This document shows positions 1 to 55,081 of a stretch of 64,000 bases of DNA, one piece after another. Numbering within the stretch: the stretch's first letter is position 1; the number at the start of each line of letters is the position of its first letter. The stretch lies in IMG/VR virus record IMGVR_UViG_3300024308_000188, positions 1-64,000 of that record; one strand, written 5' to 3'. The notes under the pieces were generated by a model. The model did not search any database and was not told the DNA's origin. It saw nothing but the letters and a program-made list of their open reading frames with translations. The position numbers and the translations under genes are program-made.

Positions 1-1732
<1,732 letters not shown>

Positions 1733-2747: not shown

Positions 2748-3139
2748 TAAAATCTGTCCTCTGGTTTACGATTAGCTAAAATGATTTTATTTTCGGCTAT
2801 ACTGGCTGCCAGTGTTATCTTTGACCAATGTTTGTAAGTAGGTGAATTGTTGAATTCTGCATTTACTGCCGCAATTTGAGGTAAGCGTCTGGTTACTCCA
2901 CGAGTACGCATTAACTCAACACAAGCTAATGCTAAATTTTCGTCACGTTCATCTTTAGCATCGTAGTACCAGTCAATAAGATCTCGAATCATATTTATCA
3001 ACTGCTTTTCCTGCATGTTCCCTACAACAATAGCATCACGCAACGGCCAAAATTTCCGTAACTCTTCGCGCTGTGAGTATTCACTTAACGGTTTATTTCT
3101 CAGATTGGTGGCCTTAGCTACAAATACTTTAACTTTCAT
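2747..3139 (-). CDS. Hypothetical protein, with an MKVKVFV-AKA leader variant
   Basis: 130 aa ORF with start/stop overlaps to both neighbours. Confidence 0.6.
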   Translation of the reverse strand: MKVKVFVAKATNLRNKPLSEYSQREELRKFWPLRDAIVVGNMQEKQLINMIRDLIDWYYDAKDERDENLALACVELMRTRGVTRRLPQIAAVNAEFNNSPTYKHWSKITLAASIAENKIILANRKPEDRF

Positions 3140-6333: not shown

Positions 6334-8001
6334 TTAATCCTTAGCTACTTTGTTGATTGCTTTTTGAATAGTGCTGTTTGGACGAGCACCAACTTTCTCA
6401 AACCATTCTTTAATTAAGTTTGGATCAATATAGTTTTGAATTGCAGTAGTAGCAGTTACTTTTTCACCGTTAACATGACCTAATTCTTCACCAACTTTTT
6501 TCATGGCCTCAATAAACCATTTATTTATTTCGGCTTCAGATTTACCACGGAAAGCCGGAGCTTTATCAAGAACAGCACCTGCAACAATGGTTCCACGGGC
6601 ATGTCGGAATTTGTGAAGTGTAATGCTTTGATCTACACCTAACGAACGCAAATATTTATTTACGTAAGTACCATTCACATGTTTAACAGCACGACCGAAT
6701 TGAGCAGTCATTATTAAATCATTTGGCTTTTTACCTTCAACCAAACTATCTAATAACCCCTTCATCATTTTGCCTTCAGGCTTATTAGTATGTATTTTAT
6801 GAATTTGTTTAACGCCACTCTTGCCCAAATAATTCAATGTGAAATATCCGGTTCCACGAGAAGTATAGTTTTTACATACCAACGTGCTAATGCCTTGACC
6901 ACTTTGACCAGCAGTACCAATACGAGCAGAGGTTTCGTAAATAAGTTCAAGAATTAAAGCAGATACAGTGTCAGCATCTTCATAATGACCTGTCTTTAAT
7001 TCATGCAACCATTTTTTACGGGCAGCCGGAAGATCTTTTATTAGTGCATCAACAGTGTTAAACTTTTTACCCGCCTTCTCTTTGCGATACTCAACTGTGT
7101 AAATACGTTGAGGCTGCCCAGTACCAAACAGTGGATAGTGAAGGAAAACATAAGTGTTATCCAATTCAGGATCGTACTTAGGATTTGCTTCTAAGCGGCC
7201 TGTTATAGCACCATCAAGTTTTACTTTGTTCGTGTTGTAATAAGCACCGTTTTCATCAACGTAACCATTGAATCCTTCAGGCACTTTGCTACGAATTTTG
7301 TTCTGCTTTAGATAGCGAACTAACTCTGTAGCCTTAACAAGCTTTTCACCACTTTGTCTGACAAAGCTTAATGTTGCTTGCTTTGTCCCTTCGTTAATGT
7401 CCCGCATTAATTTCAGGAAAACTTTATACTGTTCAGGTTTTTTGTCACGTAACGAATTTTTATCTTCGACAGTTAAGTCGGCTTCAGGCTTACCGAAGAT
7501 TTTACGGCAGAATTTATTAAGTTCTGCAACTAAATCTTGTTGGTTACTTTGCTCAGCATCTTCGTGAAGGAAAACAGCTGTTAGATCAGGATCACCAAGT
7601 TTACTAATATGACGAGTAAGATTTTTTAAACTTGCGTCACTCCCACGAAGTACAATACCCATCATATACTTCAAAAGATCAATATGGTCTTTGGTAAGAT
7701 CCAACTCTTTTGTAAGCATACCAGCTTTTTCACGTTCTTTCAGAACACGAATTAAAGCATCAAGATCCCAATCCATATCGGCATTGTCGTTTAAGCAGCC
7801 ATTTACTATAGGATTGAAAGTTGATCTTGGAATACGAAATCTTTTCAAAAATTCTTCGGCGTCTGAATTCCACTTACGGATCTTAGATTTAACTTTAGCG
7901 CCCAAAGGTTCTTCAATCAAACACACCATTATTGAACTGGCTACAAGTTTGATGAATGATTCTGTAGAGTTTTTACTCACAGCAGAAATTGAAATAATCA
8001 T
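6334..8001 (-). CDS. DNA topoisomerase IB with N-terminal extension and S-x-S leader
   Basis: Catalytic pentad in order: ARIG, YLGKSG, HKFRHARGT, LGH, IQNYIDP. N-terminus MII-SIS-A. Confidence 0.88.
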   Translation of the reverse strand: MIISISAVSKNSTESFIKLVASSIMVCLIEEPLGAKVKSKIRKWNSDAEEFLKRFRIPRSTFNPIVNGCLNDNADMDWDLDALIRVLKEREKAGMLTKELDLTKDHIDLLKYMMGIVLRGSDASLKNLTRHISKLGDPDLTAVFLHEDAEQSNQQDLVAELNKFCRKIFGKPEADLTVEDKNSLRDKKPEQYKVFLKLMRDINEGTKQATLSFVRQSGEKLVKATELVRYLKQNKIRSKVPEGFNGYVDENGAYYNTNKVKLDGAITGRLEANPKYDPELDNTYVFLHYPLFGTGQPQRIYTVEYRKEKAGKKFNTVDALIKDLPAARKKWLHELKTGHYEDADTVSALILELIYETSARIGTAGQSGQGISTLVCKNYTSRGTGYFTLNYLGKSGVKQIHKIHTNKPEGKMMKGLLDSLVEGKKPNDLIMTAQFGRAVKHVNGTYVNKYLRSLGVDQSITLHKFRHARGTIVAGAVLDKAPAFRGKSEAEINKWFIEAMKKVGEELGHVNGEKVTATTAIQNYIDPNLIKEWFEKVGARPNSTIQKAINKVAKD

Positions 8002-27699: not shown

Positions 27700-28029
27700 T
27701 CACATAAGCCGAGGCTTTGTTTTTTGAATCTGTTCCATCTTCTCAATCTGTTGCTTCAATCTTTTGTACTGTAGATAAAGCGAAATTGTTTCAGATTTCT
27801 TTTTAGATAGTTTTTTAGGATCACCTAAGCGGAAAGTTGTTGCATTCAAGCGTTGTTTTATTTGCGCTCTGATGTTACTTAACTTGCGTTTTAGAATGTC
27901 CAAGCGTTTAAAAGGTTTCGGAAGTTTTCTACGAGGCCCAAAGCGTCTTTTAGGACGGTGAAGTCTTAAGACAGGTTTCGTGCTTCCTATGTCCTCATAA
28001 CCAACAGACAAACTCACTAAAATTTTCAT
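27700..28029 (-). CDS. Very basic small protein with S-x-S leader
   Basis: Likely start at ATG 28029 (MKILV-SLS-VG). The longer ORF overlaps the tube gene and its hairpin. Confidence 0.6.
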   Translation of the reverse strand: MKILVSLSVGYEDIGSTKPVLRLHRPKRRFGPRRKLPKPFKRLDILKRKLSNIRAQIKQRLNATTFRLGDPKKLSKKKSETISLYLQYKRLKQQIEKMEQIQKTKPRLM

Positions 28030-28050
28030 AATGTGTGGCCCAAACGTAAA

Positions 28051-28073
28051 TGGGGCTTCAATACGAAGCCCCA
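28051..28073 (-). terminator. Hairpin after the tail tube gene
   Basis: tggggcttc-aatac-gaagcccca inverted repeat. Confidence 0.65.
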
Positions 28074-28081
28074 ACGGTTTA

Positions 28082-28633
28082 TTAAGAGGCTGGAACACCT
28101 GAAGGTTCAACCGGAGCAGGAATAGTGCGATAAAAGTGATCGTAAGAAAAATCACAGTTTACCGGAACAGCGGCAGCAGTACCATCAAAGCTAATATCTT
28201 GCAGACCTTTAGGGAAGAAACCACGCAGTTCACCTGCATAAGTAATCGCACCTTTTTGGTCAAAGATATTAATTGTTGCGGTAACAGAATATTCGCGCTT
28301 GAACAGACCTAACTGGAATTCTGTAGAACGAGTTACGTTCACCCAATCTTCCAACACAGTGTACATACGCATCTGGCTGTTTTCAACAAACTCTGAGCTG
28401 ATTGAACCAGAGAAAGTTTTACGACCTGCATAGCGCAACGTATGGCCATAAGCTTCTTGCAAAACTTCTTCCAGTGTTGCACCAGGCTTTGTAAATGTTT
28501 TACATTGCAGTCGGAAAAAACGACCACCTTGACTATTCAAGCCCGTAGGCAAGTTTGGAATGATGATTTCAAAAGCGTCAGACAATAAAGGATCGCCTAC
28601 GCTAGTGAATTCATCCAAAGTTACTTTTGACAT
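28082..28633 (-). CDS. Major tail tube protein (gp19-like)
   Basis: Follows the sheath gene. YAGRKTFSG...FVE...WV...GFFPKGLQDISFD...FSYD. Confidence 0.82.
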   Translation of the reverse strand: MSKVTLDEFTSVGDPLLSDAFEIIIPNLPTGLNSQGGRFFRLQCKTFTKPGATLEEVLQEAYGHTLRYAGRKTFSGSISSEFVENSQMRMYTVLEDWVNVTRSTEFQLGLFKREYSVTATINIFDQKGAITYAGELRGFFPKGLQDISFDGTAAAVPVNCDFSYDHFYRTIPAPVEPSGVPAS

Positions 28634-28658: not shown

Positions 28659-30284
28659 TTAGGCAGCATCCAAGAAAGTTTCAGAGAACGAAATAGCGCC
28701 TTTCTTCGGCACGATTGCATTCAAGTGGATACGTTTAGTGTAACGTGTAGGATCTAAATACACATCACAAACTAAATCGCCGTTTGCAATTTGATCGTTC
28801 GGGTTATTAACACGACTGCAAACAACTTCGTACCAATCCAAACCACGATCACGACGAATAGGTGCAAGTAATGCAATCATATCGTCACGAATTTTACGAC
28901 GTAAGAAATCATCGTTAGGTTGGAAAACAGATTGAAGTTGAGCGCGACGAACAATACGGTGTAAGATCGCAAGTAAACGACGAACACCAATGTCTTGTAA
29001 TGGGCCGCCACTCGCATAAAGTGTATCAGCTAACCAAATTACATTTCCGTAACCTTGCTTCTCAATAATAAAGTTGATTTGGTTTTGAGTAAGCATGTTA
29101 CGATCAGCTTGCTTGAACACACTACCAAGTTCTTCAACGCCAGAAAGAATAGCGCGATTCAAACCAGCAGGAGCAAACCAACTACGTGCAATACTATCTG
29201 TTTTTGCGTAAACAGCACCAACTTTACCTGAAGGTGGAACGAAATAAGAACGTGAATTATCTGTGTCCAACATTTTCAGGTAAGGAGTATAAAGTGCGGC
29301 ACTACTGCTATTCAGATTTAAAGTGTTACGTCTGAAGTTAACTAAGTCAGAAGCGTCAGTTAATATCTCAGGCGCATCTAAAACAGCAATACAATCTAAA
29401 CGACGAGCAGCAATGTCGTTGATTGTATGCAGAATAGGAAGATCTGTGTAGCCAGCAGACATCAGAATATCTACAGCAACTTTTTCATGATCTTCATATA
29501 AATTCCAGCCGTTAATTAAATCACCGTTAGTAATTGGCAAACCGTTATCGCCACCAAATAATTGTCCGTTGTTTTGTCCAGAAACTGGATCAAATGGGCC
29601 GCCAATTATTGCGTTTACTAACAGTGGAGAATCATTGGATGCAAAAACAAAATGCTCATGGTTGAATTTTACTTTAACCAATTTACTTCTGTTATTAATA
29701 ACATCCTCGACAAACAACTGAGAACCACTGTCATTCTTTTTATAGAATGTAGTACATGAGAATCTCTCAGCCGGAACAGTAGAAGTAGTTCCTTCGTAAA
29801 TTTCAAAAATGAACTGATGTCCATCAACATCATCTACATCAGGGTACATTACTACGTAAAGATCATCGCCCCACTTTCCTTGGTTATCAGCATAAACCAA
29901 CATGATGTCAGCTTCACCCAATCCAACACTGGTTGGATCTGAAATACCAGCAGAAAGTTTAATTGTGGTAGCAAAGTTTGATACTGTGCGAATTAAAATG
30001 CCAGCATACTTTGAATCACGGGCAACACGAGTAACGTAAAGTGCGTTACTTTCTTCTAAAAAGTGTTCAGCACAATTCAAAGCTTTTGTAAGCTTTGGAT
30101 TATTTTTTCCGAACTTTGTACGCAGGTCGCCTTTATTTCCGACAAAGATTCTTTGTCCTACACGACCGCGATCAGCAGCCGTTACAATGACACCGGTACT
30201 AACGCTTGTTGAAGCGATTTGTTCTGGTATCACGTTCTCGGAAGTATAGACGCCCGCACTCGGATTGTTAGGCGCTAAAGACAT
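28659..30284 (-). CDS. Tail sheath protein
   Basis: SAGVYTSE, YVTRV, RLDCIAVLD, VPPSG, WFAPAGLNR, IGVRRLL, FQPND. Confidence 0.95.
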   Translation of the reverse strand: MSLAPNNPSAGVYTSENVIPEQIASTSVSTGVIVTAADRGRVGQRIFVGNKGDLRTKFGKNNPKLTKALNCAEHFLEESNALYVTRVARDSKYAGILIRTVSNFATTIKLSAGISDPTSVGLGEADIMLVYADNQGKWGDDLYVVMYPDVDDVDGHQFIFEIYEGTTSTVPAERFSCTTFYKKNDSGSQLFVEDVINNRSKLVKVKFNHEHFVFASNDSPLLVNAIIGGPFDPVSGQNNGQLFGGDNGLPITNGDLINGWNLYEDHEKVAVDILMSAGYTDLPILHTINDIAARRLDCIAVLDAPEILTDASDLVNFRRNTLNLNSSSAALYTPYLKMLDTDNSRSYFVPPSGKVGAVYAKTDSIARSWFAPAGLNRAILSGVEELGSVFKQADRNMLTQNQINFIIEKQGYGNVIWLADTLYASGGPLQDIGVRRLLAILHRIVRRAQLQSVFQPNDDFLRRKIRDDMIALLAPIRRDRGLDWYEVVCSRVNNPNDQIANGDLVCDVYLDPTRYTKRIHLNAIVPKKGAISFSETFLDAA

Positions 30285-39689: not shown

Positions 39690-40346
39690 TTAACCAAAAT
39701 TCTTGAAAACCTGAGCAAACACTTTCATGTAATCTTTACGAATGCCGTGTTTGTATATACGAATAAGAATAGGTTCATATAACTCAAGAACTTTATGCAA
39801 TTCGGTTACAGCAGCCGAATACGTAACTTGAGATAAAGAACTTTGACCGCTGTTTGACATATCCAAATAAAACTTAGCGCAAGCGTATAACAGATTAGCT
39901 ATATTTTCGCTTTTAAAGTTTGCGATCATTCTAACACTATCAAGTAACTCTCTGCGAAGTTTTGAAGCTACTTCTATATACTGGGTTTCATTATTCGCTT
40001 GTATTAGTGAAGGATTGGCAATAAGTGAGGTAGAACATTTTGCTATAAATTCTTTAACCCACTCGCTATCTTTACTTTTCCACGGAGAAGTACCGTATAA
40101 AATTCTGCGTTTGAGATTTGAGATTTCAAGATCAAACTTTGCAACCTCTTCCTGAAGATTTCGTTTACGAGTATTAAAGCTTTTATCACTTTCTATTTCG
40201 TTTGCGTCCTGAGTTGTGGCGTTTACCACACGGTCGATTTCACCTAAAGCACGTACTACGGATTGACGCTCAAGGTACAACGCGCAAATTCTTTGAAACT
40301 CTTCATCTTCTTGACTTGATTCTGAAATGAATACACGAATTTTCAT
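39690..40346 (-). CDS. Helical protein with S-x-S leader
   Basis: N-terminus MKIRVFI-SES-SQ. Confidence 0.7.
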   Translation of the reverse strand: MKIRVFISESSQEDEEFQRICALYLERQSVVRALGEIDRVVNATTQDANEIESDKSFNTRKRNLQEEVAKFDLEISNLKRRILYGTSPWKSKDSEWVKEFIAKCSTSLIANPSLIQANNETQYIEVASKLRRELLDSVRMIANFKSENIANLLYACAKFYLDMSNSGQSSLSQVTYSAAVTELHKVLELYEPILIRIYKHGIRKDYMKVFAQVFKNFG

Positions 40347-40374
40347 ATTTGTTCCTTAGTGGAAACCTTATTAG

Positions 40375-40399
40375 AAAGAGCACCCAAAAGAATGCTCTT
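40375..40399 (-). terminator. Intrinsic terminator-like hairpin
   Basis: Minus strand AAGAGCATTC-TTTT-GGGTGCTCTT-T. Confidence 0.65.
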
Positions 40400-40550
40400 G
40401 AAATAAAGTTTAGATAAGAAGTGCCTTCATAATGATCTCCAGTTAAAGTTGATCAAATCACTGACTCTATGCAGCGGAGCGGTTGCTCTACTACCTTCTT
40501 TAACGTGGTGTAGTTACCACGAGATATGGATCACCTCCTTATCCTATGGA
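40400..40550 (-). ncRNA. Candidate structured RNA with a perfect extended Shine-Dalgarno and minigenes
   Basis: TAAGGAGGTGATCCA at 40541-40527, three hairpins, and the GGAG-preceded minigene MKALLI* at 40430-40410. Confidence 0.4.
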
Positions 40551-40554
40551 AAAA

Positions 40555-41775
40555 TTATTTAAGTAAGGGAGCGACAATTTTGCTGATAACAGCTTTACTA
40601 ATTGGTTTACTCATGTCAAAAGTTTCACCAAAACTGGCCTTATACTTAGTCATGTGCATCATCTTACCATTTTTGATTCCGAAACGTGCTTTAACGGTTC
40701 CGCGACGTGGATGATAAAAACTAATGCCACCAGGTGTAGGTATTAAGTCAATACCTTTTGCCTTAAGATCTTTGCCGAATTTATCAACAACATATTGACT
40801 TGCTTCATTGAATTTTCCTGTTGACGCAGGTTTTTCAACAGTATTGGTTTTGATCTTAAGATTCTTGGTAATAGCCTCCAAAACTTCTGCGTTAGTTCCT
40901 TTCACCAGTTTATGGTTAGTAACCTTAGTAGATTTCGGCCCATCCTCTTCGATCATTACAATGCCAGTACCGACATAAATATTTAGTTTATTGTTGCCGC
41001 CTACAGTAATCATATTGATAGGTAAGGAAACAGCAAAGTGATTGTATCTGTGTGCAGGTACATTAGGTGACGGACTAAAGTGCTCACGTACACGAGCTTT
41101 AATAGTCATGCCATCACCGAAAGCTTTTTTCAAGCTACGTGCAATAGAGGCTCCTAATTTCTTCACTGAATCTGCGTCTTTGTACAAAACCATATCCAAC
41201 TCTTTTACAGCATTACCAGTTATTTTTGCTAACTGGTAAACATCAGCATCCGTATCTTTATAAAGTTTCAATTCGATTGCACGATCTAAAACTTCTGACC
41301 AAATATCGTCGGCAGTGACAGGATTTCTCACTGCTTTTTCTGTGGTCTTAGAACGCATAAAATTCCGAACACCCATACCAAGGCCATGATGCGATCTGGC
41401 ATAGGCTTTAGCACGATCTGTTTTATTCAGTTGAGCTAAAGTAGCTATAGCTTCTGGAAATTCTTTTGCCACCAAACGTACAGTTGCATCAGAGAAAAGC
41501 TGTTTCTTTGTTTTTGAATCAGCAGCTGAAGGTTTAACCTTAACTTCACGGGAATCAGCTTTACCAAGCTTAGCAATCTGAGCAAACACACGTTTGATTT
41601 CTGCGCCATTGAATTCTTTCTTTTGCAATTTTTCTGTAATAGTATCAGGTGTTGCTTTGCCAGTAAACTTAACCAGAACTTTATCGTCAACAGACACTTC
41701 AAAACTGGTGCCAACTTGATTTACTACAATATCACGCTTACGCGCTGAGGTTGATGTGAATACACGAATTTTCAT
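40555..41775 (-). CDS. Basic multidomain protein with S-x-S leader
   Basis: MKIRVFT-STS-AR. Internal HHGLGMGVRN...ADDIW segment. Confidence 0.7.
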   Translation of the reverse strand: MKIRVFTSTSARKRDIVVNQVGTSFEVSVDDKVLVKFTGKATPDTITEKLQKKEFNGAEIKRVFAQIAKLGKADSREVKVKPSAADSKTKKQLFSDATVRLVAKEFPEAIATLAQLNKTDRAKAYARSHHGLGMGVRNFMRSKTTEKAVRNPVTADDIWSEVLDRAIELKLYKDTDADVYQLAKITGNAVKELDMVLYKDADSVKKLGASIARSLKKAFGDGMTIKARVREHFSPSPNVPAHRYNHFAVSLPINMITVGGNNKLNIYVGTGIVMIEEDGPKSTKVTNHKLVKGTNAEVLEAITKNLKIKTNTVEKPASTGKFNEASQYVVDKFGKDLKAKGIDLIPTPGGISFYHPRRGTVKARFGIKNGKMMHMTKYKASFGETFDMSKPISKAVISKIVAPLLK

Positions 41776-41802
41776 TTTTGATTTCCTTTAACTAAAATAT
41801 TT

Positions 41803-41849
41803 AATTACTTGAATTCTTTTTAGAGCGACCAATTACTTGAATTCTTTTT
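41803..41849. repeat. 19-bp direct repeat duplicating a gene 3' end
   Basis: aattacttgaattcttttt at 41803-41821 and 41831-41849. Confidence 0.9.
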
Positions 41850-42510
41850 TCACTGGACGACCCTGAGAAGGTCGAGATTTTTGATCCAGCTTTAGTTTGA
41901 CAGTTATATAAACTTCGTCTGTGCCGACAGTGCTTGTCATTTGTGGATAGTCAACAACTTCCATACTAAAACTTCTGACATCATGTGTTTTAGTATTTTT
42001 AGCAACAAGCTTATCAATGCGGTCAGCAAAAGCCAGTTTACATTTAGCTGCAACTTCAAGACCTTTATCTTGAACAATATTCTCTTTCTGACGAGTCATT
42101 TGTTGGATTGCTACATTCCAACCGAAGTCTGCGGTCTTAGATTTTTTAGCAGGTGCTCCAACTGATTTGGCTTTAGCCATTCTTTTTAATGTAGCAATTG
42201 CTTTGGTAGCAGCACCAGAGCTAAAGTGGAGACAATAGCCAGTTTTATCCACAGCAGAAGTTATATGTGCTGGATTGACTCCGAGCAAAGTAGCTAACTC
42301 TTCAACTTTATTTTGAGCAACGTGTGATTTACGTGCAAGTCGGATAGCATAAGCTAATCCATCAATGGTCTTAACAAAAGGTTTAGTTACCTTTAGTTCC
42401 CTGATCAATTTATTATCTGACTCAAACAATAAGGAACCTAATTCAGCAAGTTTTGCTTTAAATGCACGAGTTGTCGAAGCAGATTCAGAAATTAATATAT
42501 TAACCTTCAT
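41833..42510 (-). CDS. Basic protein with S-x-S leader
   Basis: Start at ATG 42510: MKVNILI-SES-AS. Confidence 0.7.
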   Translation of the reverse strand: MKVNILISESASTTRAFKAKLAELGSLLFESDNKLIRELKVTKPFVKTIDGLAYAIRLARKSHVAQNKVEELATLLGVNPAHITSAVDKTGYCLHFSSGAATKAIATLKRMAKAKSVGAPAKKSKTADFGWNVAIQQMTRQKENIVQDKGLEVAAKCKLAFADRIDKLVAKNTKTHDVRSFSMEVVDYPQMTSTVGTDEVYITVKLKLDQKSRPSQGRPVKKEFK

Positions 42511-42518
42511 AGAATTCC

Positions 42519-42851
42519 CTACCAAAGATCGTTGTATGCCCAATACGCAGCTTGCCATTTATCTTTATAAGCTGGCTTACCATTAGACTTTAAGATGCCA
42601 CGAAATCTTTTGCGAAAATTTTCTCTACGTTCAGGATCTTTGTGAGTAGTGAAATCTTCATAGTCAACATGGCCATACTTTATTAGTTTAAAATTATTTC
42701 CTTTACGTGCTAATACCGCACGTTTGTAGCGCTTATCCTTTATTTCAATGGGTTTATCAAAATCAATGAAAGTCATTCCCTTGTATACAAGTTTACCATT
42801 TTCTTTTTGAATACTGTCTACACTTGTACAAAGACTCACAAGAATTTTCAT
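42519..42851 (-). CDS. Tlr6F/DUF5754-like small basic protein with leader variant
   Basis: MKILV-SLC, then KLIKYGHVDYEDFTTHKDPERRENFRKRF...AAYWAYNDLW. Confidence 0.65.
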   Translation of the reverse strand: MKILVSLCTSVDSIQKENGKLVYKGMTFIDFDKPIEIKDKRYKRAVLARKGNNFKLIKYGHVDYEDFTTHKDPERRENFRKRFRGILKSNGKPAYKDKWQAAYWAYNDLW

Positions 42852-42865
42852 AAGCTCACCTAAAG

Positions 42866-42883
42866 AAAAGGGCCGAAGCCCTT
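42866..42883 (-). terminator. Intrinsic terminator with cUUCGg loop
   Basis: Minus strand AAGGGCTTCGGCCCTTTT. Confidence 0.8.
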
Positions 42884-43040
42884 AATTAAACTTCGATTTA
42901 CGCATAAAGGCAAAGGGGCCAGTTTTTTGTTTAAGGCGTGCATGAATCTCAGGAATTTCATCAACTAATTTTTGTTGACGTTTATTGCGCTGATCTTCAG
43001 GAATTTTCTTAGCAAGATTAGCCACCATGAGTTTTTTCAT
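42882..43040 (-). CDS. Small basic protein (52 aa), below the ORF-track cutoff
   Basis: MKKLMVANLAKKIPEDQRNKRQQKLVDEIPEIHARLKQKTGPFAFMRKSKFN*. Fills the gap between 43043 and the terminator. Confidence 0.55.
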   Translation of the reverse strand: MKKLMVANLAKKIPEDQRNKRQQKLVDEIPEIHARLKQKTGPFAFMRKSKFN

Positions 43041-43042
43041 TC

Positions 43043-43645
43043 TTACTCTTCCGCTTGAACTTTACTTAGCTTACTTAAAAGCTGTCTACCAAGCTGATTC
43101 TTAAATTTATCCAACTTACCAGGAGTCTTTAAAACATCCAAAGCTTTCTGGTGAGCAAGCTTTAACTCTTTGTAGTTATCTCGTTCACGCTCAAAAGTAG
43201 CTAAAGCTTTCTTTTTGGCGATAGGATTAGTTGCGTTTTCTGCATCTTTCTTTGCTTTCAACGCTCTATTTTTGTGACTTTCCAGTGAAGCAGTTGTTTC
43301 TTCACTATCAGCATCCAAACCAAACTCTTCCATAGCGCCAGAAAATCTTTTGGCGAAACTTTGCTGCAAATCGTCATCCAGTTTAGATACTTCTTTTAAT
43401 AGATTAGGATCTAAACCTTTAGATGCTTCTGCAAATCTAGGATCTAAGCCGGATGCGAATTGGCCAGTCCTTGATTTACGTTCCTTATGTTTTGCCATAC
43501 GCATATGATGTTTAGCGTACTGACTATTTGGATGTTCTTCAATATATTCTTTTTTAGCTTCGTCTGAAAGTTCATCAAACCAATTGGAGCCTCCAATTTT
43601 TTTAGGTTTGTTATTTGAAGAGCTAATAAATACTTTGATTTTCAT
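43043..43645 (-). CDS. Protein with S-x-S leader and WFxxLS...YIxxHPxS motif
   Basis: MKIKVFI-SSS-N, then NWFDELSDEAKKEYIEEHPNSQYAK. Confidence 0.7.
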   Translation of the reverse strand: MKIKVFISSSNNKPKKIGGSNWFDELSDEAKKEYIEEHPNSQYAKHHMRMAKHKERKSRTGQFASGLDPRFAEASKGLDPNLLKEVSKLDDDLQQSFAKRFSGAMEEFGLDADSEETTASLESHKNRALKAKKDAENATNPIAKKKALATFERERDNYKELKLAHQKALDVLKTPGKLDKFKNQLGRQLLSKLSKVQAEE

Positions 43646-43682
43646 AGGGCCGCCTTAATAGTAGGAATCGAACGCATTAAGT

Positions 43683-44510
43683 TCATACATCAAACTTTTT
43701 CTGTGCAGCAGCTGAAGTAAAGAACCAATTATATCCTTTAAGGACTCTTTTGGTTACAGGATCTTTAGCTGACCACGTAAGAATCTTTGAGCGTTTACCT
43801 GCTAATACAGCAAAAATCGAAGCGGTTTCACCGATCTTTGGTCTGACTGAACGGGCTTCACTTAAAGTTTTTTTCTTTGTTTCTTTACCTTCAATAACAA
43901 CTAAATAACTATAGCCTTGTGCTTTAAGTTCAGCACGTTTCTTAGCGGATTCCGCATCGTGTATAGCATCGTTACGCTTTTTCTGAACTCCAGCTAATTC
44001 TTCACGTTGTTTTTGAAGTTTAGCTATTTGTTCATCTAAGGCTTTTATGCGTTGTTTGTCTTTTGCCTCAGTTTTGTTAAAGAATGCTGTTGTATCTTTA
44101 GAATTTGTAGTAAGTGTTATACTCTGACTTCCAACATCTTCTTTTGTTATTTTGTTTCCGATTAAACTCAAAAGTTTAGCTTTAGTTAATGTTAAAGTTG
44201 ATAAATTGCCGGGATGCTTACGTGTAAGAGAATTGTCACGCTCTGCAACAGCAACTATGGATTTAACTGATCCAGATTTAGTGCTATTCACTTCGGTTAT
44301 ACGATAGTTAGTGGCCGCCTTTGTTATAACAGGAGGCATCTTTTTGTAGCGCTCTATAGTTTCTTTCGGAATAAAGCCAATGCTCGGTCTTGGTGGAGTC
44401 TTTTTAGTTGATACTATTGTATATAAAGTAAAAGTACCGCCAACAACAATTTTCTTTTCTTGGGCAGCAGTTAAATCTGCGCTCTCAGACAACATAACTT
44501 GAATTTTCAT
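43683..44510 (-). CDS. Basic protein with S-x-S leader
   Basis: N-terminus MKIQVML-SES-AD. Confidence 0.7.
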   Translation of the reverse strand: MKIQVMLSESADLTAAQEKKIVVGGTFTLYTIVSTKKTPPRPSIGFIPKETIERYKKMPPVITKAATNYRITEVNSTKSGSVKSIVAVAERDNSLTRKHPGNLSTLTLTKAKLLSLIGNKITKEDVGSQSITLTTNSKDTTAFFNKTEAKDKQRIKALDEQIAKLQKQREELAGVQKKRNDAIHDAESAKKRAELKAQGYSYLVVIEGKETKKKTLSEARSVRPKIGETASIFAVLAGKRSKILTWSAKDPVTKRVLKGYNWFFTSAAAQKKFDV

Positions 44511-44528
44511 AAGATTTTCCTATTGAAT

Positions 44529-44927
44529 TTATTTAAGAGAAGCACTTTTGGTGCCTTTCTTAGATTTAAGAGTAGCCTTTTCGCCGTTCAACAGTTTTGC
44601 CAAAGCAGCCGCAGATAAAGGTTTAATTTCATCTTTTGAATGTTTACCTTCTGGAGCAATCAACACTCTTTTTAATTTTCCGTTGCCAGCTATTTCAACT
44701 TCTTTGATGACAAGAGTATATTTGTTTAGTTGTGGAGTTACTTTGTTATCAGCCTTACGTGTGTAAGCACCTGTAACAACCATAAGAAGTTTCGTTCCTT
44801 TGGTCATAAGTTTTTTGATTTGTGACGAAGTAAATCTGTCGTCAGCCAACTGTCTGAATTTAGAGTCAGATGCTTTAAGTCTGGCCAAAGAGTACGAACT
44901 TTGCGAAACGAATACTTTGATTTTCAT
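44529..44927 (-). CDS. Basic protein with S-x-S leader
   Basis: N-terminus MKIKVFV-SQS-SY. Confidence 0.7.
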   Translation of the reverse strand: MKIKVFVSQSSYSLARLKASDSKFRQLADDRFTSSQIKKLMTKGTKLLMVVTGAYTRKADNKVTPQLNKYTLVIKEVEIAGNGKLKRVLIAPEGKHSKDEIKPLSAAALAKLLNGEKATLKSKKGTKSASLK

Positions 44928-51414: not shown

Positions 51415-53379
51415 TTACACCCTGTATTTTTTGCGGAATTGTTCCACAGACATAATTGGAATACCAGCATCCTGCGCTTTACCTGTGGTTCCACTTGAGA
51501 AGCCAAGATCTTTCACTAAGACTAAATTAGTGTCCTTGCGCCAGTCCTGTACCTTGCCGCCTTGCTCTGTAATGAACTTTTTCAGTTCTTCGTCACGTAC
51601 ACCAGTAAAGGTTACGTTTGTTCCCGACAATTTATTGCCTTTAATAACTTTCTTAACAACCTTAATCTTGAGTTTGAATGTATCTACAAACTTTTTGATC
51701 TTAGGTAAGGCAATAGCAAATTCATCGGCCAAATCTTTAAAACCAGTGAGCATACGTATTTTAGTTTCTATCTGACTCTGACTATATTTATCAGCCCAAG
51801 ATAAAACATCAGGATATGCTTCAGAAATAGCGTCAAGTCTACGAGTACCAAAATTCAAAAGATAACCGCTGGCATCAGCAACTTTAGTAAAGGTAAGTTC
51901 ACTCAAAGCTTTCTCTAAACTTTGTTCAAACAGTTGGGCTTTACGTGTACCTAGACCTTCGATGTTGATAAAATCTTCGGCATCCAATTTAAGAAATTGG
52001 CTGAGTTTTTTGTAACCGTTGTCCCAAAACTTTTGTACGGTACTAAGTTTGAATCCATCCACACCGATACGAACAAAGAAGTGTTCAATTTTCTTTTGCT
52101 TCTGAAGATCAGAACCTGAACTTGTTTTGTTTAAAAGTTTGGCGTGTATACCAGATATTTTATAAGGAACATCTGGCATCTGTGGTTTAGGTGCGGCCTT
52201 AACCACTTCAACAATATAAGGAATTACACCGCCAGATCTTACAGCACGAATGATCGCGCCTTTACCTAAAGGTCGAGCTTTATATGGAGGTGTATCTTTC
52301 AACTCACTTTTATATCCATGTTGAATATAAAATGCGTTGTGTCCAGTAAAGTTGCTTACTGTAACTCCACCAATTCGAGTAGGTTTAATGGTAACAACCG
52401 GAATTAAATTTCCAGTACGACTTGCTTCCCACTCAACAGATTTAACTGGAATATCCACCATACTGGCTGCGCTATTTTCTTTAAAAGACTTAGCGTGTTT
52501 TGGATCTTCATGACCTACAGGATAGTAGTTATCTTCTTCGACAACAATGCCGTCAATTTCATAATCACTAAGTTGAATGCGTTTTGCCAAGTATTCCGAA
52601 AGAATACTGAAGTTGATTGTTTTGACAACTTTATGAGGCACTACTTTGAAGCCAAGCGATTCAAGCAATTTAAACTGAGCGCTTGGTTTAAGTTTACTTC
52701 CTTGGCCGTTAAGAATTTTAAAGGCGAACAGAGTCAAATGTTTTGCGTAGTTTGCGTACTTTGCAAAATCTTTACTGGTAGGTAACTTATTAATGATGCC
52801 ACCAGCCGCATTACGTACTGCACTAAAATCTCCACCAGAATCCTTATGCAGATGTTTATCAAAAGTAGAGTTAGCCGCAATTGCTTCGACACGAATGTCA
52901 AAACGTGTTTTAATTTTAATGCGTTTTGGAATCTTTAGATAAGGAAGTAAATGAGAAATATCTTGGCCCTTTAATCCATCACCACGAGAATACAATTCGA
53001 CTGGAACACCTTTGTCATAACAAAGTTGTAAACTCATTCCATCTTCTTTGTCACTGAGAACGTAAGGGCCACTGTATTTCTTGGTGAATAATCCAATTTT
53101 TTTATCGTCTTTGATTTTATCAAGACTACTCATTGGATTAGGTAAACGCACTTCGACTCTTTTATTCCCAACCTTATGTCCCACTTTGAACTTACGAGGT
53201 GATTTAGGAAACCGAGATAAATATTTTTCCTTCAGATCATCGTAATCATTATCTGCAATCGGTTTTTTAGCCAGATTGTAGTATTGGTGATCTAAATAAT
53301 CCAATAGTGCATCAAACTCAGTGCGAGTGGCTTTACGCCACCCATCACTAAGAAAAGATTTTAATTGAGTTTTTGTCAT
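51415..53379 (-). CDS. ligA: NAD+-dependent DNA ligase
   Basis: YYN...DxxYD domain Ia, MSSLDK, KEDG, SRGDG, RNAAGG, EIDGIVV, RSGGVIP, HhH and BRCT. Confidence 0.95.
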   Translation of the reverse strand: MTKTQLKSFLSDGWRKATRTEFDALLDYLDHQYYNLAKKPIADNDYDDLKEKYLSRFPKSPRKFKVGHKVGNKRVEVRLPNPMSSLDKIKDDKKIGLFTKKYSGPYVLSDKEDGMSLQLCYDKGVPVELYSRGDGLKGQDISHLLPYLKIPKRIKIKTRFDIRVEAIAANSTFDKHLHKDSGGDFSAVRNAAGGIINKLPTSKDFAKYANYAKHLTLFAFKILNGQGSKLKPSAQFKLLESLGFKVVPHKVVKTINFSILSEYLAKRIQLSDYEIDGIVVEEDNYYPVGHEDPKHAKSFKENSAASMVDIPVKSVEWEASRTGNLIPVVTIKPTRIGGVTVSNFTGHNAFYIQHGYKSELKDTPPYKARPLGKGAIIRAVRSGGVIPYIVEVVKAAPKPQMPDVPYKISGIHAKLLNKTSSGSDLQKQKKIEHFFVRIGVDGFKLSTVQKFWDNGYKKLSQFLKLDAEDFINIEGLGTRKAQLFEQSLEKALSELTFTKVADASGYLLNFGTRRLDAISEAYPDVLSWADKYSQSQIETKIRMLTGFKDLADEFAIALPKIKKFVDTFKLKIKVVKKVIKGNKLSGTNVTFTGVRDEELKKFITEQGGKVQDWRKDTNLVLVKDLGFSSGTTGKAQDAGIPIMSVEQFRKKYRV

Positions 53380-53380
53380 G

Positions 53381-55081
53381 TCAACTCTCAATAGGTTCTT
53401 TATTTTTTGTTAGTGTGTCAGCTAAACTTTGTTTTTCAATCAACTGACGAACCGGAAGCTTGCGAACAAATTCGGCCATATCTTCGATTCTACGTTTCTG
53501 ACGTTTATCAATACGTACAGTACGATAGTCATCAGGCTCGTTGGTCAAATCATAAAGTTTGTAGATGATAATGTGATCGCTACCTTCCATAGTAGATATG
53601 TCGAAAATCAAGAATTCCCGTTGTTCACTGCGATCATTATTGAACTTTATGATCGAACCTTCTTCAAAATCTTTAACGACTTTTTTCACTTCAGGTTCTT
53701 CAAGCTCTTTAATAGCAGTATCTACTTCTGAATCATCAGTATCTAAATCAACTGGATCTTCATCTTCAACCAATTCTTCTTCCGGTTCCTCAACAACTTC
53801 ATCTTCAAACTCTTCTTCAGATTCTTCCTGATCTTCATCGGACTCGTACTCTACTTCTTCGTCTGCCTCAAGATCATCAACAGTTTCTTCTTCAGCAAAT
53901 TGAGAAAGATCCAGTTTAGGTTTTGGTATAGTCTTTTTAAGATCGGAAATTGCCTGTTCAAACATTTCAGCAACTTCTACTTTTTTCGCTTCGCGCTCAG
54001 GTTCATCCTTTTTATTGAACTCACCTTCTATCTGAAGATTGTCAAGATCTAAATTCAAATCGAAATCTTCTTCATCAGCCAAATGATCAACACGCAAGCC
54101 AAGATCTTCAGCGTTAACTAAACGTCTACGTTTAATCTGCTTGGCAATTTCCTTGTCAGACATTTTAACTGTTTGGGATTTACGAACTTTAATCATGTGT
54201 TCTTCAAGAGTTTGCAAATGAGCTTTAGCATCTTCAGCTTCTTGTTTACGTCTTTGACGTTCAGCCGCACGTTTCTCACTTAACTCCTGAATTTGCTTAC
54301 GTTTTGCAGCAGCTTCCCGTTCACGAATTAATTGACGTTCCCTTGCTCTCTTTTCTTTTTCACGCAAACGCTGTTCTTCCATACTGTTTTCCATATCAGC
54401 CTTGGTGAATCCACCTTCAGGCCATTTATTTTTTGGTAAAACAGTTGTCATTGAAAGAATTATGTCATAGGTGTCAAGGTTAATAGCGAACCGATTAAAA
54501 TTCTGATCTATTAACACTCCACCAGTGGCAGGTTTTATAAAGCGAATGCCAAACACATCACCACGTTTGTAGTGAATTTTTTTATCAGCTTTCTTTACGG
54601 TAAAGCCTGAAGGATCACCAACTCTACGCCATTGGTAATTGGCAAAATTTACACCTTCTTTTGCTTCAGCATTAACAGCACGAGCGGCTTTAAAATAAGC
54701 CGCATCCCATGCACGATTGTCGGATTGTTTATTGATAACCCGAACAATCTTGCCGTCTTGACCTGCTAAATTTTTAATAGCAGGTCTTTTGACTTTTTTA
54801 CTGTTCTCCAGAAGTTTGTTAGCTTCTTTTTGAGTTATTGCAAAATTTACATGGTATAAATCAGGAAGCACAACATAAAAGTTGCCGCTTCTGGCAGCGC
54901 GAATACCATAAATATCGTTCTGAGTTATAGTGCGAGTATGACTACGCTGGACAATTTTTATTCCACGAGATCCATGAAATCTATGCCAAGAAAAATCATC
55001 AAGTTCATCATATTTAGCACTAAGAGAAAGCAAGTTAGAAACCGATAACGGATTTAAGTTGAAACGAAGTTTTTTCATCAA
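53381..55081 (-). CDS. Multidomain protein with leader, two shared [DN][FY]xW...D[IV][FY]GIR domains, coiled coil and acidic tract
   Basis: LL-SLS-AK, DFSWHRF...DIYGIR and NYQWRR...DVFGIR. Confidence 0.7.
   Translation of the reverse strand: MMKKLRFNLNPLSVSNLLSLSAKYDELDDFSWHRFHGSRGIKIVQRSHTRTITQNDIYGIRAARSGNFYVVLPDLYHVNFAITQKEANKLLENSKKVKRPAIKNLAGQDGKIVRVINKQSDNRAWDAAYFKAARAVNAEAKEGVNFANYQWRRVGDPSGFTVKKADKKIHYKRGDVFGIRFIKPATGGVLIDQNFNRFAINLDTYDIILSMTTVLPKNKWPEGGFTKADMENSMEEQRLREKEKRARERQLIREREAAAKRKQIQELSEKRAAERQRRKQEAEDAKAHLQTLEEHMIKVRKSQTVKMSDKEIAKQIKRRRLVNAEDLGLRVDHLADEEDFDLNLDLDNLQIEGEFNKKDEPEREAKKVEVAEMFEQAISDLKKTIPKPKLDLSQFAEEETVDDLEADEEVEYESDEDQEESEEEFEDEVVEEPEEELVEDEDPVDLDTDDSEVDTAIKELEEPEVKKVVKDFEEGSIIKFNNDRSEQREFLIFDISTMEGSDHIIIYKLYDLTNEPDDYRTVRIDKRQKRRIEDMAEFVRKLPVRQLIEKQSLADTLTKNKEPIES

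Follow-up and report, generated by a model that had tools for sequence, protein, structure and literature searches.

A conserved phage RNA that joins a maximal complement of the 16S rRNA 3' tail to a pseudoknot, a possible docking site for the small ribosomal subunit

Why should a phage message carry the longest possible match to the mRNA-docking tail of the ribosome at a place where no gene begins? This question was raised by an intergenic spacer of an uncultured jumbo phage, which was studied in a window of 64,000 nucleotides (the whole stretch of DNA analysed; positions refer to it). The window matched two IMG/VR jumbo-phage contigs of 319.5 and 214.5 kb. It encodes a tail sheath, GroEL, an NAD ligase and a topoisomerase IB, and the best cultured match for the sheath was Phage NCTB with 45.6% identity. 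No tRNA or tmRNA gene was detected with ARAGORN. An earlier note, made from the sequence alone, had proposed that the spacer holds a 30S-binding RNA inside a cargo array. The neighbouring genes have no known function, and searches of the flanking ORFs against Pfam and PHROGs gave nothing, so the cargo array is unverified.

A Shine-Dalgarno sequence without a gene

The plus strand reads TGGATCACCTCCTTA at 40527-40541, and hence the minus strand, which carries almost all genes of the window, reads TAAGGAGGTGATCCA. This sequence is a perfect 15-nt complement to an enterobacterial-type 16S rRNA 3' end. An exact 15-mer is expected about 1.2e-4 times by chance, and with up to 2 mismatches the site was the only match in the window, whereas shuffled sequences gave 0.05. 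The hexamer AGGAGG occurs only once on the coding (minus) strand in 64 kb, at this site, against seven times on the other strand. The genes of the phage itself use short TAAGGA/AAGGAA sites located 5-7 nt before ATG.

The site lies in a 208-nt spacer between a 406-aa ORF (40555-41775, minus) and a 218-aa ORF (39690-40346, minus), 13 nt after the stop codon TAA of the former (40555-40557) and 180 nt before the ATG of the latter, which has an ordinary ribosome-binding site (TAAGGAA; site and start codon at 40344-40359). No ATG follows UAAGGAGGUGAUCCA at normal spacing. A GTG is present 13 nt downstream, but lies within a hairpin and is lost in several relatives. The 214-nt spacer folded well beyond shuffled versions (-63.9 kcal/mol, z = -4.9).

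The order of elements on the minus strand is as follows. A local hairpin (40544-40522), beginning 10 nt after the stop codon, pairs GGAU(A)AGGA with UCC(A)UAUCU and leaves GGUGA in the loop. It is predicted to mask the Shine-Dalgarno (SD) core, and its 3' arm contains the conserved AUCU (40525-40522). Hairpin P1 (40521-40504) follows directly, with CGUGGU, the loop AACUAC and ACCACG. An A-rich linker, UUAAAGAAG (40503-40495), leads to GUAGU (40494-40490), which pairs with ACUAC of the P1 loop (40514-40510) and thereby forms the second stem of an H-type pseudoknot. Hairpin P3 (40488-40477) consists of GAGC-AACC-GCUC. In the nested fold it is extended by GUAGU/GCUGC (40494-40471) to the imperfect stem described in the earlier note, which cannot form at the same time as the pseudoknot. 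The sequence GCAUAGAG (40472-40465) is followed by a variable region with a weak hairpin (40464-40441), not conserved outside the closest relatives. GGAG (40440-40437) and a mini-ORF (40430-40410, MKALLI*) come next. An intrinsic terminator (40399-40373) ends the unit with AAGAGCA, a 10-nt loop, TGCTCTT and TCT. It was missed by a simple terminator scan because of the loop length, but relatives keep it with changes only in the loop and at the base of the stem.

Two elements of the earlier note were not supported. The proposed GTG minigene is simply the 5' arm and loop of P1, and its GTG is absent from Erwinia phage Y3, Dickeya phage JA29 and the pattern-search member L376, in which the pairing is kept with different letters. 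TGATC exists only inside the SD sequence (40533-40529), so that the suggested TGATC/GATCA stem would be a long-range pair; it is not used in the predicted fold, and GATCA is not kept in relatives.

Conservation and covariation in relatives

Relatives were first collected through the 406-aa protein, a search which is unbiased with respect to the RNA. The protein has relatives at 53-86% identity, and the contigs fetched for four of them, at 55-86% identity, all carry the element. AGGAGGUGAUCCAUAUCUC and the next ~60 nt are nearly invariant although the proteins have diverged, and the 13-nt core AGGAGGUGAUCCA is invariant in the close relatives. The element also sits next to different genes: after an extra 122-aa gene in contigs L006 and L007, before an extra 151-aa gene in L005, and two genes further downstream in L008. 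While blastn and tblastn of the element and of the 406-aa protein against cultured phages found nothing at default E-values, relaxing E to 10 on the 58-nt core revealed Y3, the JA phages and 9NA. Pattern searches added the members L029, L050, L040 and L376, and Dickeya phages JA29 and JA11 as well as the 265-kb contig L419 extended the set. Overall, eleven distinct relatives keep the core while the flanking genes change. Y3 and JA29 share the architecture, yet their flanking proteins are not detectably related to those of the window, which indicates that the RNA is conserved independently of its neighbours.

MAFFT placed the 3' strands of P1 out of register between loop-size classes; a covariance model was therefore not used, and pairs were tabulated by script. 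P1 keeps its pairing in five versions, namely CGUGGU/ACCACG, CGUGGU/GCCACG, CCUCGU/ACGAGG, CCGAGU/ACUCGG and CUUCUU/AAGAAG. The pseudoknot shows compensatory changes between close relatives: JA29 has UACUGCC/GGCAGUA where JA11 has UACCGCC/GGCGGUA, and Y3 has CUAC/GUAG where L419 has CUGC/GCAG. P3 is GAC/GUC in Y3 and L419. CAUAG, within GCAUAGAG, is invariant and unpaired in the predicted folds of all eight rows of the alignment and is also present in L419, but absent from JA11 and JA29.

The mini-ORF is less clear. The closest relatives keep it, with an in-frame extra codon (MRQALLI*), and other lineages have different SD-preceded mini-ORFs (MKNTVGGGGGN*, MKNNVSGDVSN*, MPGVYDSRRCRVGGGGGN*), all of which stop 7-11 nt before a terminator (10 nt in the window). 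Y3, L376, JA29 and L419 have none. In the sub-lineage of the window, CUUCUUAUC of the mini-ORF (40421-40413) is complementary to GAUAAGGAG in the SD module, its GGAGAU is also complementary to the module, and the nested fold uses these pairs. RNA pairing could thus explain the conservation of this stretch as well as coding does.

The SD core was predicted to be paired in all nine family members folded, and in L008, L029 and L050 the GGUGA loop is fully exposed. This masking argues against an always-open ribosome sponge. A perfect 8-bp version of the hairpin occurs in phages 9NA and KA2-1. A conserved upstream sequence, AAATAATTTTTCCA, is not a repeated promoter motif in the window; in the closest relatives it supplies CCAC (CCAU or CUAC in others), which can pair with GUGG of P1 and gives another alternative fold.

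Recurrence of the module in other phages and prophages

The 5' module also recurs in unrelated phages and prophages. Of 112 distinct AAGGAGGTGATCCA sites in a viral sample, 33 continue with ATCT within -1 to +4 nt (2.6 expected, p = 7e-27), which is more than continue with ATG (21). A G+C-rich hairpin follows ATCT directly in 108 of 148 sites, against 28 of 86 controls. The hairpin loop is complementary to the sequence a few nucleotides downstream over 5 nt or more in 54% of sites, compared with 22% when loops were paired with the tails of other members and 14% in controls, and combined pseudoknot scores of 9 or more occur in 22% of sites against 3.6% after shuffling. As this wider class was collected by searching for the SD itself, SD conservation is unbiased only in the protein-anchored families. 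Not every hit is a member: some are ordinary coding sequence or ordinary gene starts, such as a Brevundimonas small ORF with a GTG start and an ABC-ATPase motif.

We propose to describe the class as (A)AGGAGGUGAUCC, 0-7 nt, AUCU, and a hairpin whose loop pairs with sequence 2-10 nt further downstream; the window has every part. Dozens of members have different stem letters but the same geometry, with a stem 1 of 3-6 bp, a first loop of 0-2 nt, a stem 2 of 4-8 bp and a linker such as UUAA, UGAU or UUAG. Members come from viral contigs of many environments, from prophage-like regions in genomes of Lachnospiraceae and other Bacillota, Alphaproteobacteria and Patescibacteria, and from cultured phages. 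The latter include a Klebsiella phage as well as Salmonella phage 9NA and E. coli Nonanavirus phages, which have the SD and hairpins but no evident pseudoknot. The Klebsiella-type element was not found in E. coli genomes. Members lie on the sense strand between genes, for example before large terminase, head protease and scaffold genes, often with the next start about 45 nt after AUCU. In about 40% a terminator follows, without a ribosome-binding site.

A set of loci collected through the head protease gene, and thus unbiased for the RNA, showed which parts belong together. The pseudoknot CGGAGCUGUCCG-UUAA-ACAG is kept both with and without the SD, so the two parts can work apart, whereas UAUCU is present only when the SD is present. 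SD variants include AGGGAGGUGAUCC, AAAGGCGGUGAUCC and ...GAUCCU, and in three of the four SD-less versions a terminator lies just upstream. AUCU therefore belongs to the SD module, as the 3' arm of the predicted masking hairpin. Shuffling the 5' flank did not change the energy of the local hairpin across the class, and for most members the masking stem is therefore GGAGGU(G)/(U)AUCUCC rather than one built from the flank. The proteobacterial and jumbo-phage members use a 5' flank plus GGA, paired with UCC plus UAUCU, at -4 to -10 kcal/mol. In the AUCUCC type the two C's are shared with pseudoknot stem 1, and the hairpin and the pseudoknot exclude each other.

Possible function and relation to known systems

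The RNA is best, though only tentatively, explained as a cis-acting site that captures a 30S subunit without starting a protein. This function is inferred from sequence comparison, without experimental evidence of transcription, 30S binding or any effect on the message, and for a phage whose host is unknown. The 16S 3' tail is the only known partner common to hosts this diverse, and even the loop bases stay complementary to it. In this reading, a 30S subunit nucleates on the exposed GGUGA and pairs with the whole SD, the 13-15 bp duplex outcompeting the 6-8 bp mask. It then finds no start codon, meets a pseudoknot in the mRNA path and stays parked. Cryo-EM of S. aureus ribosomes shows that SD helices extended beyond the canonical motif fit on the 30S platform (PMC13009471). 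The subunit may be one just released at the stop codon 13 nt upstream, where a terminating ribosome would begin to open the mask; however, close spacing to a stop codon is no commoner than for ordinary ribosome-binding sites carrying the same SD. A parked subunit could shield the downstream RNA from nucleases, serve as a standby ribosome for the next ribosome-binding site, which in the window belongs to the mini-ORF, or control mini-ORF and terminator in this lineage. The members followed by a terminator without a ribosome-binding site do not fit a pure standby role, and a very stable SD duplex would also hinder hand-over to a downstream start. The predicted masking could also mean that the hairpin, and not 16S pairing, is the functional form. 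If 30S capture does occur, the module would be a general phage device for controlling ribosome traffic or RNA survival between genes, and a ready-made part for synthetic biology.

A more speculative, and rather unlikely, extension regards the module as a riboswitch-like device whose ligand is the ribosome itself. GGUGA would act as a five-base toehold; invasion by the 16S 3' tail, for example just after termination at the adjacent stop codon, would release the anti-SD arm AUCU(CC) and switch the fold between hairpin and pseudoknot. In this way phages of many lineages would sense or capture free small subunits and set the fate of the next gene or of the transcript.

Two alternatives are unlikely but survive about equally well. 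In the first, the extended SD compensates for a weak AUA/AUC start codon and drives a tiny upstream ORF, which together with the mini-ORF would form a translation-sensing attenuator for the downstream gene. AUC sits 7-12 nt after GGAGG, the distance of a start codon, and in S. aureus non-canonical AUU/AUA starts come with very strong extended SDs (PMC13009471). Three lineages have an SD-preceded mini-ORF in front of a terminator at similar spacing, and the one-codon insertion keeps the frame. However, ORFs opened from AUC vary from 3 to more than 40 codons without frame preference, P1 would have to be unwound before AUC could be placed in the P site, the mini-ORF peptides differ between lineages or are missing, and the conserved CUUCUUAUC is also the complement of the SD module. 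In the second, the structure alone acts as a protein-binding site, a barrier to RNases or a processing signal, and the SD likeness arises because the stem copies an SD:anti-SD helix. This is supported by the predicted pairing of the SD core in every relative folded, by the stems UAAGGA/UCCUUA or UGAGGA/UCCUUA of 9NA, KA2-1 and JA29 (-7 to -10 kcal/mol), and by the persistence of the pseudoknot without the SD in some protease-linked loci. However, a hairpin alone would be free to covary, yet its letters stay the exact 16S complement, including the unpaired loop GGUGA and GAUCC, across phages from many environments and across the prophages.

A trans-acting small RNA of about 170 nt that soaks up free 30S subunits or covers their anti-SD appears still less likely. 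The unit ends in an intrinsic terminator, some members are short SD-hairpin-terminator units, and some lie near phage tRNA arrays or a tmRNA gene. On the other hand, no promoter-like site was found upstream on the minus strand in the absence of transcript-end data, there is one copy in 64 kb, the SD is predicted to be masked, and many members sit inside polycistronic head operons a few tens of nucleotides before a start codon. Blocking the anti-SD would also harm the phage, whose own genes depend on SD sites. A recoding signal, although an SD with a downstream pseudoknot may resemble the dnaX and prfB frameshift signals and the T4 gene 60 bypass, is very improbable, since there is no slippery heptamer, the pseudoknot starts directly after AUCU rather than 5-9 nt after a shift site, the codon before the stop does not match AUC, and all three frames close within a few codons after the 406-aa ORF. 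A chance match or relic ribosome-binding site, despite the frequency of such sites just after stop codons in compact genomes, is contradicted by the chance expectation of about 1e-4, by a sequence that is invariant while flanking proteins diverge to 55% identity, and by the covarying structure.

Orphan SD sequences that hold ribosomes are known from a few Bacillus messages. The module seems to work most like these ribosome-dependent stabilizers, the STAB-SD of Bacillus thuringiensis cryIIIA, the polypurine 5' stabilizer of phage SP82, and the aprE and hbs leaders of B. subtilis (PMC5737220 for hbs), in which an SD probably pairs with the 16S 3' end without, or independently of, productive translation and the bound ribosome shields the downstream RNA from 5' decay. 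The window element agrees with them in its 16S complement without a conserved ORF. Those elements appear to be about 9 nt long and have no conserved masking hairpin or pseudoknot, whereas the present one is 13-15 nt long, follows a stop codon, has a fixed AUCU and pseudoknot, and also occurs in phages of Enterobacterales. The entrapment pseudoknots of the rpsO (S15) and alpha-operon (S4) mRNAs likewise seem to hold the 30S in a complex that cannot initiate, but these need a repressor protein, contain the real start codon and each regulate a single gene. A conceptual parallel is offered by the TURBS of caliciviruses, which probably tethers the subunit after termination, but pairs with 18S helix 26, lies upstream of the stop and is followed directly by a restart codon. 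The extended SDs with non-AUG starts of S. aureus infC, cvfC1 and ccpN (PMC13009471) open conserved protein genes, while no conserved ORF follows here.

Searches against Rfam 15 gave no relevant match in the window at E up to 10, and none at the motif in 13 further loci at gathering score or in 8 loci at E up to 5. The pistol self-cleaving ribozyme, which may share a hairpin whose loop forms a pseudoknot after an A-rich linker, was not matched either; the P2 helix enclosing the pseudoknot strand and P3 is absent, and no conserved G-U cleavage context was found by eye. A small-molecule riboswitch is not supported, as pseudoknot stem and loop sequences vary freely across members and only the pairing, the 0-2 nt first loop and a U-rich/A-rich linker are kept. 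The module is apparently undescribed in the papers searched, although a description in other sources cannot be excluded. Interestingly, existing annotations already misread it: Y3 gp207, the start of 9NA gp42 and a 'terminator' feature in AVIO78A all overlap the element.

Conservation of the pseudoknot in the absence of the long SD

In the protease-linked loci L290, L300, L308 and L309, the pseudoknot CGGAGCUGUCCG-UUAA-ACAG is located about 60-30 nt before the start of the head protease gene and about 10 nt upstream of its ribosome-binding site. It is kept in these phages although they lack the long SD. In L290, L309 and L311 the pseudoknot lies just after a terminator. These observations suggest that the pseudoknot may have a function of its own. 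In Brevundimonas and relatives (loci L195-L198, L205, L209, L224, L235 and L250), the same 14-nt SD precedes a conserved GTG-initiated small ORF of about 21 codons. This is an ordinary but very strong start site and not the module. On the coding strand of the window, the only other AGGTGATCC (27818-27826, minus strand) lies inside an ORF (27700-28155) and is probably the result of chance.

Sequence elements adjacent to the module

A palindrome of the type TTGCGAC-NN-GTCGCAA(CAG) recurs next to the module in Lachnospiraceae-type prophages. It is located downstream of the motif in the loci L249, L232, L204, L200, L173, L240 and L202, and upstream in L185 and L237. The palindrome resembles a regulator binding site or promoter region. 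L249 also contains an Rfam match to the Streptococcus sRNA SpF66 (RF02442, 52 bits, above the gathering score) at 2842-3057 on the minus strand, about 90 nt downstream of the module, and a weaker match is present in the locus L231.

In some large phages the module is found in the vicinity of tRNA or tmRNA genes. It lies within about 1 kb downstream of a 14-gene tRNA array in the locus L080 (5540-7727, minus strand) and about 575 nt downstream of a tmRNA gene in L063 (2268-2694, plus strand). In L051 it is situated just upstream of what reads, on visual inspection only, like the 5' end of a tRNA.

Gene annotations overlapping the element and genomic context of the window

In Erwinia phage Y3 (L388), a 45-aa hypothetical protein, gp207 (2038-2175, opposite strand), is annotated antisense across the RNA element and is probably a spurious gene call. 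In phage 9NA (L387), the annotated GTG start of gp42 at position 1562 lies directly after the element and has no nearby SD. The same frame closes after 20 codons in E. coli phage AVIO78A (L390, 695-742 and 762-821), in which the element is annotated as a terminator. The start of gp42 may be mis-set.

On the minus strand of the window, six ORFs in the run at 39690-44927 begin with ATGAAAAT(T/C), encoding M-K-I. None of those scanned against Pfam or PHROGs gave a clear match, and the shared beginning could reflect a paralogous family or a common translation-start context. The window also encodes (at 125-1732, plus strand; 6334-8001, 51415-53391 and 28659-30284, minus strand) a GroEL-type chaperonin, which is located on the opposite strand to nearly all other genes, a eukaryotic-type topoisomerase IB, an NAD-dependent ligase and a tail sheath, which are hallmarks of jumbo phages.
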